A stretch of DNA of 61,118 nucleotides, filler included, from Platydemus manokwari (taxonomy: Eukaryota): assembly GCA_037951405.1 (NCBI GenBank). It is 5 parts of 5 records of this genome, joined end to end, with 100 filler letters (N's around TTAATTAATTAA, not from the genome) between each part and the next. Parts side by side here need not be neighbours in the genome. Positions count along the whole stretch, not along the records: positions 1 to 21,721 come from JBBMOY011311426.1; 4 more parts are not named here. One strand, written 5' to 3'. The notes below the pieces were generated by a model that was not told the DNA's origin, made no database searches, and saw nothing but the letters and a program-made list of their open reading frames with translations. A program made the translations under genes and the position numbers. Within the stretch, counting starts at the first letter, position 1. Each line of letters begins with the position of its first letter. Below, piece by piece: positions 4,129 through 19,761 of the stretch.

Positions 4129-5583
4129 TCACCGTACTCTCACATATCGATAAAGTTTAGCTATGTTAAAGTAAATTATTTGTGCCAATTCAAATAATCC
4201 GACAACGCTTATTCCCAAATATAATCCCATCAATCCTCCAATATCAGATAACAATTGCGAAAAAGTGTATGAATATTCTTCTGCAAATAAATCGCCAACC
4301 TTACTAACTTTGTTGATGTTGATCTGTAATACATTATCTCTCATTTCTTGTATGATATTTTTATCTTTTGGATCTATGGAAATATTGGCAAACAAGTAGG
4401 AATTAATTTGTCGAAGAGCGTCAAGACTATTGTTGCTTATTTCATTGGAGTTTGCTATGAAATTATCTCTTCTGGTTATTGGTTTATATGTTAAAGTATC
4501 ACAGGGATTTGCTAAATATTTGAGACAATAATCCCTTCCCTTTAAAAAGTCTAAATAGTAATCCTCTCCACTTCTTGAACAAGACTTAATATTGGCTTTT
4601 TTTATAAGTATATAGTGTGTCACATTTTTACATAAGTTCAGATACCGCATTTTATTCTCCTTGGCTAAAAGCGACTTGAGATAACAGATACAAACATTCT
4701 CAATATATATCTGATAATGCAAAGCAGTACAATCATCATAGTCTCCATGAAATACTCTTGATGTCTGAGAAAATACATCATAAACCACAGTGGTATAAAT
4801 CTTATGACGACAATTTTTTATTTGTTTGTTTCTAGATTGAGTAACATCTACATTATAATTATATCCAGGATGCAGAATAATTTCATTTTTAGGTGATAAC
4901 TCATTCTCTTCATTAATATAAAGATAAACGGATCGAGGTCCATATCCTAAATCAAACAATTTGTAAACATTTTCGTCTAATTTAAGGATTATCGAAATCG
5001 ACTTAATTAAATGACATTTATAACTTAGAATATGTAAGCAATTTCTCAATCTAATTGAATAACAAGGCATATTATAATTTTTGGAAACCATTCTGCCTGT
5101 AATTATAGATATATTACCAAGCTCTTGAGAATACCTGCTTATGATCGTATTGTCATTTTTGTGAGATAACTTAAAAAAGAAATGTTTCAGCTGATCGTTG
5201 TAATCAATATTCAACTTCCGCAGATCAAGAGAAGACATAATAATCCCATTTACTTTTTCTGATGTAAGATTTAGGTATTTTGTAAAATTCTTAACTTTAT
5301 CAATTATTTCCTGCAAATATATATGTTGTGTTGACTTTGTTTCAATATTGTACGGCACAATTGGAGAACAAATTGTCATTTCTGGCCAGGTATATTTTTC
5401 TGTTGAATATCTTATTGATATTGGATAAGATAAATATTTTCTGACAACAAATGTAACATTCAGTCCTATTCCTCCAATTCCAAATATAAATAATATGAAC
5501 CAAAATATTTTATATTTTCTAGAATTATTAGAATAGATATGAGTGATTCCATGAATTGTGCTGTTCTGGAAAACACTGCTCAT
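4129..5583 (-). CDS. DEG/ENaC (amiloride-sensitive sodium channel family) subunit, intronless, 484 aa
   Basis: N-terminal HG motif (STIHGITHI), TM1 (IFWFILFIFGIGGIGLNVTFVV), post-TM1 WPEMTICS (FPxxTxC-like), Cys-rich thumb region, TM2 LLSDIGGLMGLYLGISVVGLFE with GxS filter. Confidence 0.93.
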   Translation of the reverse strand: MSSVFQNSTIHGITHIYSNNSRKYKIFWFILFIFGIGGIGLNVTFVVRKYLSYPISIRYSTEKYTWPEMTICSPIVPYNIETKSTQHIYLQEIIDKVKNFTKYLNLTSEKVNGIIMSSLDLRKLNIDYNDQLKHFFFKLSHKNDNTIISRYSQELGNISIITGRMVSKNYNMPCYSIRLRNCLHILSYKCHLIKSISIILKLDENVYKLFDLGYGPRSVYLYINEENELSPKNEIILHPGYNYNVDVTQSRNKQIKNCRHKIYTTVVYDVFSQTSRVFHGDYDDCTALHYQIYIENVCICYLKSLLAKENKMRYLNLCKNVTHYILIKKANIKSCSRSGEDYYLDFLKGRDYCLKYLANPCDTLTYKPITRRDNFIANSNEISNNSLDALRQINSYLFANISIDPKDKNIIQEMRDNVLQININKVSKVGDLFAEEYSYTFSQLLSDIGGLMGLYLGISVVGLFELAQIIYFNIAKLYRYVRVR

Positions 5584-11508: not shown

Positions 11509-14500
11509 ATGAATATATTTATAGTGTGCTTCATCATCTTGCGAAACTTTTCAGCTAAAGGAGAAGTAAGGCTGAAAATAGACCAAATTTCACAATTTCC
11601 AATTACTACAAGTAGACCTTTTGAGATTTTTATGGTTTCAGATGAACCGAATGGGAAAATTGTTAATGCATTAACTGATATGATGATTATACAGATCAGT
11701 GAATATGGTACAAAGAAAGAAAGAGCAATTTTCGATTATGGATTCAAGGATATGATCGATCAAGAATTCAAGGGTGACTATATGCGAATCCCTTTATGGC
11801 AAAAAAGCAATAATAATGAAGCAATAAATGTCACAATTATCTTTACGAGATTGGCAAATAACAAAATTTTGGAAATTTTTACGATGTCACCACCTCCATC
11901 TGAACGCCGGAAGCTCCTAGATTCTCTACAATCAGCCATTGCGATTTATGAAGAAAAAATACAATTACTCATTCCACCTAAAATAGATTTGAGTATTCAA
12001 ACTCAGGATGGACACAAAAGGGAATTAATGCTCGACCAACCTGGTATAGCATTATGTAGGGGTTACGATGGTGTCCCAAACCCGAAACCGTTCTGGGTGA
12101 ATCTTGATGACTTCAAAATTAAAGAAGAAACTTATAATCAAGAAAAGAATGAAATAGTGGCCCATATTAATGTGCATGTGAGGGATCATTTAAAAGTGTT
12201 ACGATGTCAAGCAGGAGCAACAAACGATAGTGTCAAGATCAAAGTCCTTCGTGAGTTATTCCTATGATTGATTGATTCAAATTTAACTGTCAATCGATAT
12301 TTGTAGATCAACCTTCACAAATCACTCTCGAACCTGAAGTAGGTCTCATGGTTGAGAATGGTAGTACGGTGGTGTGTGTCGCTGTTGATGGGTATCCTTA
12401 TCCAGAAATACGTTGGCACTTGGTAAGAGGACCTCCAAATGCATCTCGCTTTTTCAATATCAGCAAAGACGGAAAGAAACTGCATTTGATGCCCGAAGTT
12501 CCTCATAATTCCGAATGGACATTCAATTGTACGGCGACCAATATGCTGCCCAGTTACACTGGCATCTTCAACAGGACCGTGTCATTCACAGTGGGCCGTA
12601 TGTTTTTTGAAAAATATTTTATTGGATTGAAATCATAACACATTAATTGCCCAAAATCTTATTTATAATTCAATCTATAAACAGCAGACCACCAAACCTA
12701 CTATAAGTCACATCATGATGCACCTCTGTTTATAATTATTTGGACTTTCTATCATCAGAATAATCATTCCAAATGATTATTGATTAATAAATAACAAGTG
12801 GTCATCATTGTAAACAATCAGCCATGTATTTACATTTGTTCAGATTAAGAGGCTTGCTTATCGAAACATTGACAATGTCAAGAGAAATAATTGGCCAATA
12901 AATCATTTTCGTTGTCCTTTTTACTCATCAGTATCCAATAACAACTCGATTCGACTATTTCATAATTAGCTCACAAATGTATTCTCAAATACGTTTATTT
13001 CATTCATGGCTTATCTATAGCTATGGATACTATTTAGCTTCTTATCAGCTGGTATTTCACTTTATTAATCTTCACTGTTAGTTGCTAACACTTCTTTGTT
13101 TTTATGTTGGACTCAAAAGTCATAATTATTAACGAGCAAAAATAAATATTTTTATATTACATATTTTCCAAAAAAATATTCTTCTTCTTATTATTATTTA
13201 ACTAATTTGTTAATTATTTTTTAACATATTTTTTGAGAGGTTGCATTAATGGTTTGAGCAAGATAAATAAAAATATTAAATATTTTTAATATAATCAATT
13301 AAAAATACATTTTTCTCTGAAAATCATGTGTATATCCAGGCTGCTTAGATAATTTAGCCATGTTTGGCATTGTGGAGCTATGGGATTCTTTGTCTTCAGC
13401 ATGAATGAGATTGCTTTATGATCAGTTCTTAGTGTGAATCTTTTCCCGTACAAATAGTGATTGAAATTCTGACCAAAGTAATATATTGTTAATAATTCCT
13501 TCCTTGTGATACAATATCCTTTGTCATGTTTGCTCATTGCTTGGGACTCTTTCATTTCCTTGGTTATCTCTTTGCAATAATACTGCTCCTATTGTGCCGA
13601 AACTTGCGTCGGTATCTAGGATGAAATCCTTGTTATAATCAGGGAATGACAAGATCGGTGCTTCTGTGAACGCTTTTTTCATGTATTCGAATGCATTGCT
13701 GCATGCTTCATTCAAATACGTTTTTCATTATTTTTACCACACAATTCTTTCAGTGCTCTTTTTTTGAGTATTCCTTTATAAAACCCCTGTAATATCCACA
13801 AATTCCAAGAAAGCTTGTCGAAAATCAAGGCATAATCTTATTTCCTTTCTATCTTTTTTTCCATATACACAAAAATGGCGTATTCCACGCTGAATTGCAT
13901 TTTCTTATAATGTTATTTTCTCTTAAATTCTTGATTGTCTCTTCTATCTTTGCTTCTAAATTTGCCGTTTGTCTCCGAGGTTTGATATTTATGGGACTCC
14001 CATTTGTTACAATCATATGTTTTACTAACTTTGTACTACCGATGTCCCAATGGTCAGCCATGAATACGTTACTATTCGCTATTAATATTCCCCATAAACG
14101 AGATCCTTCTTTCACCGCAAGATATACTTTTGTTTTTTTGAATATATTTTCATCGGTTATATTCCTACCAAATCTCACTATTATTTCACAGATGGAGGTG
14201 TTTAATTCTGTTTCTTTGTGCTTATAGTGCTTTTTCCATTGTAATTCTAATCCACATTCTTCTTGAAACTCTATTCCGCCTATAATCTTCGGTTTCATGT
14301 GCTCAACTATTATGAATGATATCATCTTAGACTGACTTCCTAACCTGATTTTTATTCTTATTCTACCAAGAACCTCTAATCTACTTTCGTTGGCACATCG
14401 TAAACTTTCACTTGTATTTGACTTCTACTTGTTCGACTGTCTCTAACATCGTCTTATCCATGACATTTACTCTTGCGCCAGTGTCTAACAAGCATTCAAA

Positions 14501-17500
14501 TTCCTTATTCTCTATTTTTATAGTTATTCTCAGTCTCCCTTGCATTTTATCATAAGAAACCTGGGGAAGCTTTAACTCCTTGATCGTTAATATTCTTACT
14601 ACTACTTTCTTGTCTCCTTGTATTTCTACCACATTGTCAGTCGTCTCTTTCTTTATAAATTTTACAACTTTCCATTGTACTCTCTATTCTGATTCTATAT
14701 TATCGTTATTACCGGTTACAATTTGTTTTTCTACTTTCCAATTTGTTTTGTTCTGGGCAATGTCTCGCTTGTTTATTTTAGTTTTTATTTTGTTTATTTT
14801 ATATCAATTACTTATATGATAAATATCAATATGACTAATCATACTCTTGCTAAAACTTAAATTTACTGTTTAGTGTGTTGCCACGACACACTCTCTGGAA
14901 GTCGGCGCGTTCTATTTTGGGTGTTCTTCGTTGTATTCTGAATCCGATTCTTGTTCGACCCTTGCTACTTGTCTATTATTTCGGTTCACCATTCTGTAAT
15001 TTTGTCCATTGAAACTCTGTCTGTTTACATTTTTTCTATTGAAACTCTGTCTGTGATCAAACCTTCGCTGGATTAATGATGTCTCTTGCTTCTAGTTGGA
15101 CCTTTATTGTCCGAATCTGTCTAGATTTGTATAACATTCACTCTCGCGATGTCCTTTATGCCATTTATGCACTTTATGACATTTTTTTTCTCGCCATGTG
15201 ACCTAATCGGTGACAGGTGTAGCACGTCTCGACTTTCTCGTTTTATAATTTCCTGCTATATGCCCTGGTTTTGGTCAATTATAGCACGGCCTATTATCTA
15301 CCTTTCTTTCCAGAGGCCTAGGTTTCTGTTGTGCTCTGACTATCGTGGTCCATTCTCATTCTCCCACCGAGTTTACTTCTCATTCTTTACTTCTTACTTC
15401 ATCTAGTTTTTTAACGGTTTTTTAAATTTGATCCACTTCCTCAATATCCCTCATTTTAATTTCTTTCTCTAACTACACATTATCTGCACAATGCACCAAG
15501 AGAAAAGCCGTTAGCTCCTTTTTAGTTGTTTTGTCAGACCATGTCTTCCACCAGTTTATTTACCTTTTAAAATACACGTCCGTCGTGGAGCGGCCATCCA
15601 TCCAATCCTGAGCAAAGCATTTCTTTTGGCCAAACGCTTTCCTTAGCCTGTCTTCGTACCCCATTTTGGCGTATGTTGCCTCAAATTGCTCTACTAAGCC
15701 GTCGTCCAATCGTGCTAATACGATAATGTATTGGACGTGCTTTGGGATTTTCCCAGCCTCGAAATATCGATTACACTTTTTAATGAAGTGTACGACGTTA
15801 TCCCCCATTTTTAATATGTCTGGCAACAGCGAACCTAGGATTGCAACCACGTGCATGGTCGCCATGTTAGTTGCTAATACTTCGTTTTGTATGTTGGATT
15901 TAAAACCCATAATTATTAACGGGCAAAAAAAATTTTTTATATTACATATTTTCCAAAAAAATATTTTCTTATTTATAGCCTTCTTTAAAGATTCAAATTG
16001 CCATTAATATAAACATTATTTTTTGACATGATATGAACAGGATTATTTATATATAATATTACATAATATTAATATTACCAATAATGATAATAATAATAGA
16101 AATATTGAAAATTCTCTGCAAAACAAATTTCAATGATTCAGCGAATAAAATAATCAAGGAAGTCTGAAATCCAAATATAGATCGAAATCAGAATTATGCC
16201 AAACTATAATCTATCGCATATTGTACTGACCCAGTCCCAATAATATGAAGTATTTACAATAAATCGTGTCAGTGTGTTCAGATCTTATTATTTAACTTTG
16301 ATGGATAAATTAATTGATATCTTTTTCATTCAGGTCAACAAGAAGGTTTATTTGGACTTAGTAGGTGTCGTCGTGTTCTTCTTTGTTTGTGTTTGTGCCT
16401 CTGCGAGTGTATGACTGCTTTTGTAGTGGTGTTTGTGTGCCTGTGGTAGGATGTGTGATTAGACACTTGACTGTTTTAACCTGTGCACTTCTTTCGGTGC
16501 TATGTCTATGATGCTTGTGACGAATGATGTCTGTTGATTCATCATAATATTGTTTTGCTTTGATCATTAAAATAGTTATTTCATCTCTTTTGATGTTGAT
16601 GCCATGCTTGTGATTTATGGGATTGATCGATATTGAGAATATCACATTTCTCGTTTTCGTTAAGATCTAAATTTTCAAATCATGATCGGCGTTGTAGTCC
16701 TGGGTGCAATCATACTTTTCCGTACCATGATTGTATTCATTGTTTGCATTGCTCGACGCAGCTTTATTGGACATTTGGAATCTCGCAACCATCGTAGAAA
16801 CGGGTAAAATTAATTGATTTTGTAATAAAAAACTTTTTTGTTTGATTTCAGTCAAACTGCATCAGAAGAAAAGGTGGTTTTGTATTCATTTACTAAGTGA
16901 TTTTGCTTCGAATGTGTTGCATTTGTTTTAAAACAACAATAATCATAAATTGTTATTATTTGATTTGATAATATTATATTTATATTTATACAAACATTAT
17001 TTTCAATGCAATTAAATTTCGATTATAATTTTGATTCTAATAATAAATATTTTTTCAGATAAAGAAAGGAAATGGATTCAAAGTTACCTTGATAAAGGTA
17101 TAGGCCGAAATAGTGTTATATCTTCAATAATTAGTTTTTTTTAATTGCTATTATTATTAATAATAAAGTAAATTTTTTTAATTACTAAAATGTCATTATA
17201 AATTTGCAAATAAAGTTAGCTTGATTCCAAGTAATTCTGATTAAATAAATTATTACGAGATGTATTTATCAGACATAATGATGAAAATTACTGTTAATAT
17301 TTAAAAATCACAGACATTTCGAATCGATTTTGAAGAATTATTTCACTTGTACCGAATCAGAAAAGTACATTAAGCGATTGTTTATTTTTACATTTTCAAT
17401 AAACAATTGCAACAGTGAGAAAATATATTTCATTTCTTATCACATCAATTTTAACCAATTGTCATTGGACTTTATCATAAATTTTGGCTTTACATAGCCA

Positions 17501-18173
17501 CTGTTGATGGACTTAGAAATTGTTTCCCAGTCAAATACGATTGTTGATTGAACATGTCATAATAATGGCATGTAAATTTTATATCATGCATCAGATTAAA
17601 AACAATGATTTTTATCAATCTGCTAAACATTCATTTTTGCTTGTTCTTTGAAAAATGATTGTGTTTGATTTATGATTGGTTCGATTTGGGATGTATTGTT
17701 GGTATGTTTTAAATAATTTTCAAATAGCGATTATGTTCAGAGTAAAAATTGATTGTAACAACAAATCATTTCCAAATTTTATATTTTAGACTTTGGAAGC
17801 CGAACAGGTGACACTGTTGCCACCTGGAGCTCCTCAAAACCATCTAGACATGGTTAACAATGGGACAGGTTTGCCGCCACCACCACATGAATATCAATTA
17901 ATTATAGACAACGAAATTAAATCCGTAATTCCACTGGACCAACAAGTCTTTTTATACAATACAATAGCATTAATATAGAATGACTAGGTTATCAACGAAA
18001 CGTATCCAGAAGTAACTTATGCAGAACTGAATACGTCTGATCTGCCGATGAAAGAGAACAAGTGTCTCAAAGCGAACAATAACGACGACCAAGTAATATA
18101 CTCGCAGATCATAGGTACGATGTCTACTCCAGATTGCGGGCAGCGAGGATACATGGATTCAGATAATGTCTGA
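11509..18173 (+). CDS. Ig-superfamily type I membrane receptor with cytoplasmic tandem ITIM-like motifs. Proposed exons: 11509-12250, 12307-12597, 16334-16360, 16665-16803, 16852-16873, 17059-17097, 17790-17924, 17988-18173
   Basis: Signal peptide MNIFIVCFIILRNFSAKG; Ig-like C..G.P.P...W...C motifs (CRGYDGVPNPKPFW...C and CVAVDGYPYPEIRW...FNCTATN); all proposed junctions are GT-AG and phase-compatible; TM IMIGVVVLGAIILFRTMIVFIVCIA followed by RR; tail has VTYAEL and VIYSQI. The first two exons are solid; the micro-exons are tentative. Confidence 0.7.
13076..15975 (-). mobile_element. Decayed, internally deleted Ty3/Gypsy LTR retrotransposon in intron 2 of the Ig receptor
   Basis: Direct repeats ~13076-13190 and ~15865-15975 both end ...AACA on the minus strand. 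PBS TGGCGACCATG lies right after the 5' LTR (15854-15864). Gag fragment 15560-15910, CCHC knuckle CYTCHRLGH (~15195-15225), protease LLDTGA (14408-14632), RT start (CNSAWNTP), FLGICGYY thumb motif, RNase H (DTDASFGTIGAVL, RTDHKA). RT YxDD core and integrase not seen. Confidence 0.92.
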
Positions 18174-18618: not shown

Positions 18619-19761
18619 TTATTTCAACGAAATAACAGATTCGAAAATACTTTTGTTTTCCATTTTGGATGCTTTTTTGGAAGAAAAAGATATCACCTTG
18701 TTTAAAACAGATTTTCTTTGTTTGTATTGAATCTCTTCGGTCAAATCACTGTCCCAGACGTCGGATGAGAATGTTCTTGATGATTTATTTGCAGATAACG
18801 AAACAAATCGTTTGGATTCTGATGACTCTGTCAATCGACGACTGAATCGCAAAAACAGCTTCCTGAATCGAGAGTCAGTTCTGAAAAGAATATAAAATAT
18901 AAATAGGACTGAAGTGTATTGACCAATGTCAGCTATCATTCCAATTATATATAAAATGATATAGTCATTATCATCAATTCGTTTAGCCATGAACACTATG
19001 ATAGGTGTTGCCATTAAAATAAAGATTCCATTGATAAATATCGCTAAATTTTTCAGTTTCCTTGATCGTGAACCCACTTTCTTGGTAAGCTTTCGAAATT
19101 GAATCGTTGTGAAAACTGATGTAATCCATGGAACAAAGAAATGAAAAATCCCATTTATAACGAGAATTAAAATTGTGTGTAGTCGGGTTGTACCAATAAT
19201 TAGAATTTGACCGACTTCTTCACACCAGACAGTTCGAATATTGTATAACATTACGATGTTTAACACCAATATAATAAGTACCATACATGTACAAATGGCG
19301 TGAATAATATTTTTATTTATTCTTTGGAAAGGCTTCATCAACCTAATCAAATTCAAAACTGACAACCCTGATAACATATAGAAAAACGAAGCATTGATAG
19401 AGATGTATATATAGAATAATATGTTGTAGCAATAAACAACGAATGACATAAATTGAATCGCCATTCCTGATCCAAACAATATCAAAAATTGAATTTCATA
19501 GAAACTCACATTAATAAATACTTTAAGTAATTGAATATATAAAATCCAAAAATAAATCGTGTAGAACGTGCCAGACACATTGATCCGATACATTGACGCA
19601 AGAGTGATCAAAGCTAGTAAAAACATGACATTGGATATAATATTCATGATCAAATAAATGATTGTAAATTTCACAAGCCATAATTTTGAGCTCAGTAAAT
19701 GGTTTCCTTTTACTGTACAGTTATTAACTTTCTCAATGATAAAATCAAGATAGGAAACCAT
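18619..19761 (-). CDS. Intronless 7TM protein, probably a divergent rhodopsin-class GPCR, 380 aa
   Basis: About seven hydrophobic segments, TM3-end LIRL (degenerate DRY position), extracellular-loop Cys (VWCEE), TM5 FFVPW, TM6 ATP, TM7-helix 8 FYILFRTDSRFRK, Ser-rich tail. Confidence 0.7.
   Translation of the reverse strand: MVSYLDFIIEKVNNCTVKGNHLLSSKLWLVKFTIIYLIMNIISNVMFLLALITLASMYRINVSGTFYTIYFWILYIQLLKVFINVSFYEIQFLILFGSGMAIQFMSFVVYCYNILFYIYISINASFFYMLSGLSVLNLIRLMKPFQRINKNIIHAICTCMVLIILVLNIVMLYNIRTVWCEEVGQILIIGTTRLHTILILVINGIFHFFVPWITSVFTTIQFRKLTKKVGSRSRKLKNLAIFINGIFILMATPIIVFMAKRIDDNDYIILYIIGMIADIGQYTSVLFIFYILFRTDSRFRKLFLRFSRRLTESSESKRFVSLSANKSSRTFSSDVWDSDLTEEIQYKQRKSVLNKVISFSSKKASKMENKSIFESVISLK

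Follow-up and report, generated by a model that had tools for sequence, protein, structure and literature searches.

A 61,118-nucleotide (nt) stretch of DNA from Platydemus manokwari (assembly GCA_037951405.1), referred to here as the window, contains an unannotated receptor gene at positions 11509–18173, on the piece at positions 1–21721 (contig C1311426). The gene belongs to an expanded family, restricted to its lineage, of type I membrane proteins within the immunoglobulin superfamily (IgSF), and both the gene and its family are real. It is plausible, and on balance probable, that the exons for a cytoplasmic tail with two ITIMs (immunoreceptor tyrosine-based inhibitory motifs) are carried on the same mRNA as the exons for the immunoglobulin (Ig) domains and the transmembrane (TM) helix. 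The whole interpretation that is favoured, a tandem-ITIM IgSF receptor whose motifs act as docking sites for the phosphatase SHP2, is tentative and somewhat short of probable. All searches and structure predictions were carried out exon by exon.

Searching the genome with exon 1 recovered 10 further loci at 23–33% identity, and a profile built from the exon 1 paralogues brought the number of paralogue loci in the genome to at least 21; a search for paralogues had been proposed in the initial annotation. Where the contig permitted, an exon 2 homologue was present after a short intron in the paralogues, and the donor of intron 1 was placed at the same codon and in the same phase (cGTAAG following Phe or Leu). 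Exon 2 was 29–40% identical to exon 2 of six paralogues (31–40% in five of the six). Several paralogues (L017/L028, L032, L037 and L034) are intronless and hold the whole protein in one open reading frame (ORF), in the order signal peptide, N-terminal domain (N-domain), two Ig domains, TM helix and tail, the tail being ~40–170 amino acids (aa) long. A search of 1.8 billion representatives with the family profile returned 33 matches, 16 of them strong and full-length; some are 55–80% identical to particular paralogues of this genome and thus come from related species. One homologue, P0004, is transcript-derived (2.1-kb contig of a public run) and is spliced exactly at the exon 1/exon 2 junction, then continues into a TM helix and a 60-aa tail. 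When exon 1 was compared by word search with 5.8 billion proteins, no match appeared in the length range covered, 136–432 aa. By sequence comparison, the paralogues and the conserved intron support exons 1 and 2 as real beyond chance, and the earlier suggestion of a lineage-specific receptor is borne out in the form of a lineage-restricted IgSF type I membrane receptor.

The ectodomain was assigned from profile matches and from models. Exon 2 matched the Pfam families Ig_3 (E 9.4e-5), I-set (3.2e-4) and C2-set_2 (5.2e-4) without reaching the Pfam cut-offs, which relatives exceed (P0009, Ig_3, 36.6 bits vs 30; P0005, C2-set_2, 32.1 vs 21). Exon 1 had no Pfam match. An AlphaFold (AF2) model of exon 1, made with the paralogue alignment, had a predicted local distance difference test score (pLDDT) of 79. 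In this model the first Ig domain (Ig1, residues 155–247), of I/C2 type, superposed on an Ig domain of RPTP-sigma (Z 10.4, root-mean-square deviation (rmsd) 2.0 Å over 86 aa), and its Cys183 and Cys233 are invariant across the family alignment. The whole exon 1 model superposed on the V-C2 units of nectin-4, nectin-3, Rst, SYG-1, Neph1, B7-H6 and MAG, with two-domain Z scores of 9.8 for nectin-4 D1-D2 and 8.9 for Rst D1-D2.

The N-domain had been set down in the initial annotation as an unrecognised domain of ~150 aa; its fold was resolved as V-set-like from its model and from comparisons in VIA and Foldseek. Folded alone with 27 sequences, it reached a pLDDT of 91.8 and a predicted template modelling score of 0.86. 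The top VIA matches were T-cell receptor (delta and alpha) and antibody V domains (Z 8.5–8.0, rmsd 2.9–3.2 Å, 110–121 aa), the best of them at Z 8.5 with an rmsd of 2.9 Å over 110 aa, and the top Foldseek matches were VHH domains and CTLA-4 (E 2e-4, template modelling score 0.5–0.66). Because the comparison tool treats a Z of about 8 as only borderline informative, the label V-set-like was preferred to that of a proven V-set homologue. The domain has neither the Cys23-Trp41-Cys104 'pin' nor a sequence-profile match; profiles miss it because it contains zero cysteines and has no positions invariant across the family other than P31 and F112. A new fold was also considered for the N-domain and was ruled out by the uniform V-domain matches of its model. 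On the models, then, the N-domain is a cryptic V-set-like Ig domain, which makes the ectodomain V-C2-C2, as in nectin and IRRE proteins. Two short family members from related species, P0021 and P0024, lack C2 domains and consist of a signal peptide, the V-like N-domain and a TM helix, so the cryptic V-like domain is used there as a standalone module.

The gene model is given in Table 1. Exon coordinates proposed in the initial annotation were all correct on reading the sequence, and its phase-compatible GT-AG joins checked out, the phases at the exon borders running 0>1>1>(1)>2>0>0>0>stop. Its description of the gene as invisible in the ORF track did not hold for exon 1, which is itself an ORF of 252 aa. 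The genome had also been described as reduced; the assembly measures 911 Mb, in ~2 million contigs, and its gene content is metazoan (ASC/ENaC channel, rhodopsin-type G-protein-coupled receptor (GPCR), SHP2 and IgSF proteins). The piece that carries the locus is AT-rich, with a GC content of 22–27% outside genes and 35–46% in exons.

Table 1. Features of the receptor gene, in window positions; features marked as proposed are predictions
Feature	Position	Strand	Remarks
Exon 1	11509-12250	+	ATG start; 252-aa ORF; phase 1 end at donor C/GTGAGT
Signal peptide in exon 1	~11509-11562	+	
Cysteine-less V-set-like N-terminal domain in exon 1	~11563-11976	+	
First C2-type Ig domain in exon 1	~11977-12250	+	Cys183...Cys233
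Intron 1	12251-12306	+	56 nt, GT-AG, phase 1; position conserved among paralogues
Exon 2	12307-12597	+	Second Ig domain, C2-set, Cys..Trp..Cys; both ends phase 1
Intron 2, if exon 2 is spliced directly to the TM exon	12598-16664	+	Minus-strand long terminal repeat (LTR) retroelement remnant inside
Proposed 27-nt micro-exon	16334-16360	+	Frame-keeping, dispensable, without paralogue counterpart
TM exon	16665-16803	+	Starts phase 1, ends phase 2 at donor GG/GTAAAA
Proposed 22-nt micro-exon	16852-16873	+	Restores phase 0
Proposed 39-nt micro-exon	17059-17097	+	Phase 0, in frame, optional
Exon 7	17790-17945	+	52 codons, proline-rich cytoplasmic tail; donor CAA/GTCTTT, phase 0
Proposed intron between exons 7 and 8	17946-17987	+	42 nt, GC 24%, stops in frame
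Exon 8 (last)	17988-18173	+	61 codons + stop; C-terminus ..SDNV

The TM exon encodes a short stalk, a hydrophobic helix of ~25 residues and a basic stop-transfer RR, and has a GC content of 41% vs 17–31% in its flanks. In the paralogues L014, L015 and L016 the exon for the second Ig domain ends in phase 1 and is spliced directly to a TM exon a few codons before the helix, and the TM exon of L015 has the same start, phase, ..QIMI.. motif and RR stop-transfer as that of the window. By these sequence comparisons, the assignment of the TM exon to the receptor gene is supported beyond chance. An arginine (16724–16726) lies in the middle of the helix; the paralogues are without it, L015 having an isoleucine at the aligned site. 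A basic TM residue in vertebrate paired receptors marks the members that couple to signalling adaptors.

Intron 2 contains a degraded LTR-retroelement remnant on the minus strand (~13099–15988, ~2.9 kb) with broken ORFs, an RT_RNaseH match (E 6.8e-14) and flanking direct repeats of 103 nt (13099–13201 and 15886–15988). A single public run was found to contain the locus (run X1), and in it the word depth of the remnant was 10^4 vs ~40 for single-copy DNA. Run X1 differed from the window at two positions in exon 2 (12325 and 12545), both read as non-synonymous (Thr>Ile and Met>Ile), and at none in exons 7 and 8. Just past the proposed 27-nt exon, a GT-rich segment of 44% GC (16361–16520, + strand) has open frames for hydrophobic peptides rich in Cys and Val; one of these frames, if splicing from exon 2 led into it, would terminate the protein after ~16 hydrophobic residues, and the segment may be an alternative 3' end or simple sequence.

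Three micro-exons had been proposed between exon 2 and exon 7, and their splice sites and borders are present as described, while their standing differs: the 27-nt exon is unsupported and dispensable, and the 22-nt and 39-nt exons are only plausible. Exon 2 joins position 16665 in frame without the 27-nt exon, as in the paralogues, so this exon is not needed; its codon score is unremarkable (p ~0.08), and as a required exon it was rejected, since the direct join of exon 2 to the TM exon is in frame and no paralogue has a counterpart. The TM exon and position 17790 are out of frame with each other, and joining them takes a bridging exon with a length of 1 mod 3. Of 12 open bridging candidates, the 22-nt exon stands out clearly as the best by its pyrimidine tract and donor; its codon score is only mildly unusual (p ~0.02), and it has no RNA or comparative support. 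The 39-nt exon has a good acceptor and donor and a codon score of p ~0.07. Contigs of run X1 have alternative joints in the AT-rich tail intron (16986>17068, 17032>17416 and 17407>17707). The contig that skips 16987–17067 would delete the acceptor of the 39-nt exon; the shorter side of that joint is 20 letters and AT-rich.

Exons 7 and 8 are likely coding in their frame, by GC content, open length and codon score. Their GC contents are 44% and 43%, vs 24% in the 42-nt intron and the flanks, and they are open for 52 and 61 codons where the other frames contain stops; in ~12.6 kb of non-coding sequence read in six frames, only 26 and 11 sampled windows of the lengths of exons 7 and 8, respectively, were open. 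The log-odds of codon usage were 0.52 bits/codon for exon 7 and 0.41 for exon 8, and 0.33 and 0.47 for exons 1 and 2. The 11-mer GACCAACAAGT occurs both at the donor of exon 7 and at the end of the L015 TM exon, which reads ..DQQ/GTAACG; in L015 a 47-nt intron and a short final exon come next. The weak-looking donor CAA/GTCTTT gains support from this, because L015 shares both the 11-mer and a short intron at that place. The C-terminus of L015 is also D-x-V. If the 42-nt intron were retained, the protein would end at 17976–17978, without the ITIMs. The tail thus most likely consists of the TM exon, one or two small exons, 17790–17945 and 17988–18173.

A search of the own genome with exon 8 found only itself (single copy), and when the TM and tail exons were compared with the paralogue loci by tblastn, no significant match resulted. 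The closest paralogue, L012 (G000:C533329), has no clear TM or tail exon in the 5 kb downstream. At L012, coiled-coil and MATH/TRAF-like ORFs lie on the same strand 1.3–2.2 kb past the exon for the second Ig domain, and two predicted proteins of a related species, P0025 and P0011 (Ig-Ig, coiled coil and MATH_2, E 1.5e-4), have the same order; either gene predictors have merged neighbours in conserved synteny, or the fusion is real.

Exon 8 encodes VTYAEL (18012–18029) and VIYSQI (18093–18110), with the tyrosines 27 aa apart. The initial annotation had read these as two consensus ITIMs at SHP-type spacing, and they were confirmed in the sequence, in a coding-like frame. Both have V or I at -2, a small residue at +1, L or I at +3 and acidic residues upstream. 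Tandem (I/V/L/S)xYxx(L/V/I) pairs ~20–30 aa apart engage the tandem SH2 domains of SHP-type phosphatases. When exon 8 was shuffled, at least two motifs at a spacing of 18–35 residues occurred in 0.3% of trials. An orthologue of SHP2/Csw, likewise proposed for a search by the initial annotation, was found at L042 (G000:C1354805, 502–1169, minus strand) as two adjacent SH2 exons, whose best PDB matches were the N-SH2 (E 5e-51) and C-SH2 (E 2e-27) domains of human PTPN11. This 2.7-kb contig ends before the phosphatase domain, which was not found on it.

In the favoured interpretation the ectodomain would bind a cell-surface or soluble ligand, and a Src-type kinase would phosphorylate both tail tyrosines. 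The doubly phosphorylated tail would then engage the N- and C-SH2 domains of the organism's own SHP2/Csw orthologue and relieve its autoinhibition, and SHP2 so engaged would damp or redirect tyrosine-kinase signalling. Here we infer that the gene is expressed, that the exons downstream of the TM exon are joined as proposed, that both tyrosines are phosphorylated and bound by SH2 domains, and that the outcome is inhibitory.

Several points weigh against this interpretation. Run X1 was classed as genomic DNA, because its contigs span exon–intron borders without splice joints. No orthologue of the window gene or its tail was present in the 1.8 billion representatives (best identity 37%), and exons 1 and 8 had no matches in the Joint Genome Institute (JGI) metagenomes. 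The putative link from the TM exon to 17790 depends on the 22-nt exon, picked by eye from the 12 candidates. In run X1 the contig depth falls from ~40 to 10–16 at 16940/16945, and coverage of the tail is less even than that of the Ig exons; together with the alternative joints, this drop suggests several haplotypes, or presence/absence variation of the tail region. Among the relatives, six have a tail that is known or predicted (L017/L028, L032, L037, L034, P0004 and L015); a canonical ITIM was found in none of these tails, near-misses being present in those of L037 and P0004. A random 190-aa tail of family composition has such a pair of motifs in ~2% of cases, and a chance pair is possible, since the family has 21 paralogues or more and the window was selected by the scan for its motifs.

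The alternative that survives best is that the receptor and its tail are roughly right and the motifs incidental or read by partners other than SHP, the protein being an adhesion or recognition molecule of the nectin/IRRE type; this is possible, though rather doubtful. The tail would make its contacts through the proline-rich stretch, the C-terminal ..D-N-V or other SH2 or phosphotyrosine-binding (PTB) proteins. Such a molecule would fit the modelled V-C2-C2 ectodomain, which superposes best on adhesion molecules (nectin-4, nectin-3, Rst, SYG-1, Neph1 and MAG), the ending of L015 in D-x-V and the absence of ITIMs from all six relatives with tails; the ITIM-like pattern occurs 0.21 times per 100 aa in family proteins, and chance pairs in ~2% of 190-aa tails also count for this reading. 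It has to contend with two motifs that fit the narrow vertebrate tandem-ITIM consensus at typical spacing with acidic residues upstream, with the presence in the genome of the reading partner, SHP2, and with the lack of sequence homology to nectins, whose C-terminal E/A-x-Y-V is absent here.

It is unlikely that the receptor ends soon after the TM exon, or uses other 3' exons, so that the ITIMs are never on the receptor, in which case 17790–18173 would be untranslated, provide an alternative 3' end or form a small transcription unit of its own. A TAA stop does follow immediately after the TM exon if the donor at 16803 is unused, and the TM exon and 17790 are out of frame unless a small exon bridges them; the apparent haplotype that removes the acceptor of the 39-nt exon, the four-fold change in contig depth at 16940/16945 and the wide variation of tail length among paralogues also count for this reading. 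Exons 7 and 8, however, are clearly coding-like, in one frame and on the same strand 1 kb downstream, and are without a plausible start, signal peptide or domain of their own, and the next gene is on the opposite strand. The DQQ/GT donor, homologous to the end of the L015 TM exon, ties exon 7 to the family, and both the pyrimidine tract and the donor of the 22-nt exon are good. A decaying or silent member of the family (a pseudogene), its frames open only through youth, is highly improbable: the ~2.9-kb high-copy retroelement remnant in intron 2, the lack of any RNA run found to contain the locus and the non-synonymous nature of both allelic differences in exon 2 would agree with it, but all eight proposed exons are open with all splice sites intact, other genes have similar exon GC content and codon usage, a gene need not be damaged by a transposon that lies in an intron on the opposite strand, and the lack of RNA runs is uninformative here.

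A broader proposal, which goes beyond the tandem-ITIM receptor favoured here and is quite unlikely as a whole, is that the family comprises paired recognition receptors of this lineage with an origin separate from those of KIR/LILR, Alr and fester. The members would have cryptic V-set heads and mostly short or motif-less tails, with the tandem ITIM and the TM arginine combined in this one. Acting through SHP2, inhibitory members and adaptor-coupled ones would together set a threshold for self/non-self or pathogen recognition.

Among known systems, the closest conceptual analogue is the Alr family of Hydractinia, by analogy of layout. Alr proteins are expanded single-pass receptors whose V-set domains are without the Cys-Trp-Cys pin and were seen only by structure prediction (PMC9546547). 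ITIMs of the pattern [I/L/V/S]xYxx[I/V/L] occur in just two Alr members, and SHP homologues are present (PMC9546547). Both families are expanded, fast-evolving and single-pass, with a pin-less V-set head followed by I- or C2-type Ig domains, few members with ITIMs (predicted for the one here) and SHP homologues in the genome. They differ in the Z score to V domains (8.5 here vs 12.6–16.7 reported for Alr; PMC9546547), and the locus has no Fn3-like stalk and lies in an AT-rich genome with introns of 42–56 nt. No sequence homology to Alr was found, and a language-model neighbour, 'Allorecognition 2', stood at 0.89, under the 0.9 line of the tool.

Tandem-ITIM IgSF receptors of vertebrates include PECAM-1, SIRP-alpha, PZR, LAIR-1 and KIR-L. 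The predicted protein resembles them as a type I IgSF protein with two [V/I]xYxx[L/I] motifs ~20–30 residues apart near the C-terminus and a tandem-SH2 phosphatase in the genome. It has no sequence relation to them beyond the generic Ig fold, its paralogues do not share the tail, and its TM helix contains an arginine, which in vertebrates marks activating and not inhibitory partners. Nectin/Necl and IRRE proteins (Neph1, SYG-1 and Rst) have the same V-like/C2/C2 plan and are single-pass with a short tail that ends hydrophobic. They differ from the predicted protein in that there is no Pfam or PDB sequence similarity and that the V-like domain here is without a disulfide; the afadin-binding E/A-x-Y-V of nectins (EYFI in Necl) is absent, the C-terminus being SDNV. 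On the models, the likeness to nectin and IRRE proteins is architectural only.

Among other invertebrates, an oyster NCAM1 homologue is described with two ITIMs and an Fn3 domain and as recruiting an SH2 phosphatase (PMC11841013), and the fester and uncle fester receptors of Botryllus with ITIMs in their tails (PMC12582321, PMC11507803). As far as these accounts describe them, they are, like the predicted protein, invertebrate IgSF or recognition receptors with ITIM tails. They differ in that the oyster protein has Fn3 and fester is not V-C2-C2; no homology to them was found. They come with expression and functional data, whereas this locus is known from sequence alone. On the accounts cited, ITIM-bearing invertebrate IgSF receptors are an already established kind, to which this locus would by analogy add a member.

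Two further ORFs lie on the same piece, both on the minus strand. A single-exon ORF of 484 aa (4129–5583) is a full-length match to amiloride-sensitive sodium channels (Pfam ASC, E 1.4e-31), and its sole relative in the word search is 32% identical. An intronless ORF of 380 aa (18619–19761) has seven hydrophobic segments and no Pfam match; its atlas neighbours (0.94–0.97) are clusters of divergent GPCRs, rhodopsin-class or chemoreceptor-like, from nematodes and rotifers. This GPCR-like ORF converges on the receptor gene, the ends being 446 nt apart.

ITIM-bearing Ig receptors have long been regarded as a speciality of the vertebrate immune system. The cnidarian, tunicate and mollusc examples suggest that ITIM logic is older, or that it evolves repeatedly. 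To these the locus adds a previously undescribed family that has expanded to 21 or more genes in this genome and has relatives in other species, a V-set-like head invisible to sequence profiles, and one member with a textbook tandem ITIM in its predicted last exon. If the tail is confirmed, the lineage would gain a candidate inhibitory receptor whose SHP2 partner has already been found; if it is not, the family still illustrates how many Ig receptors escape annotation by profiles.

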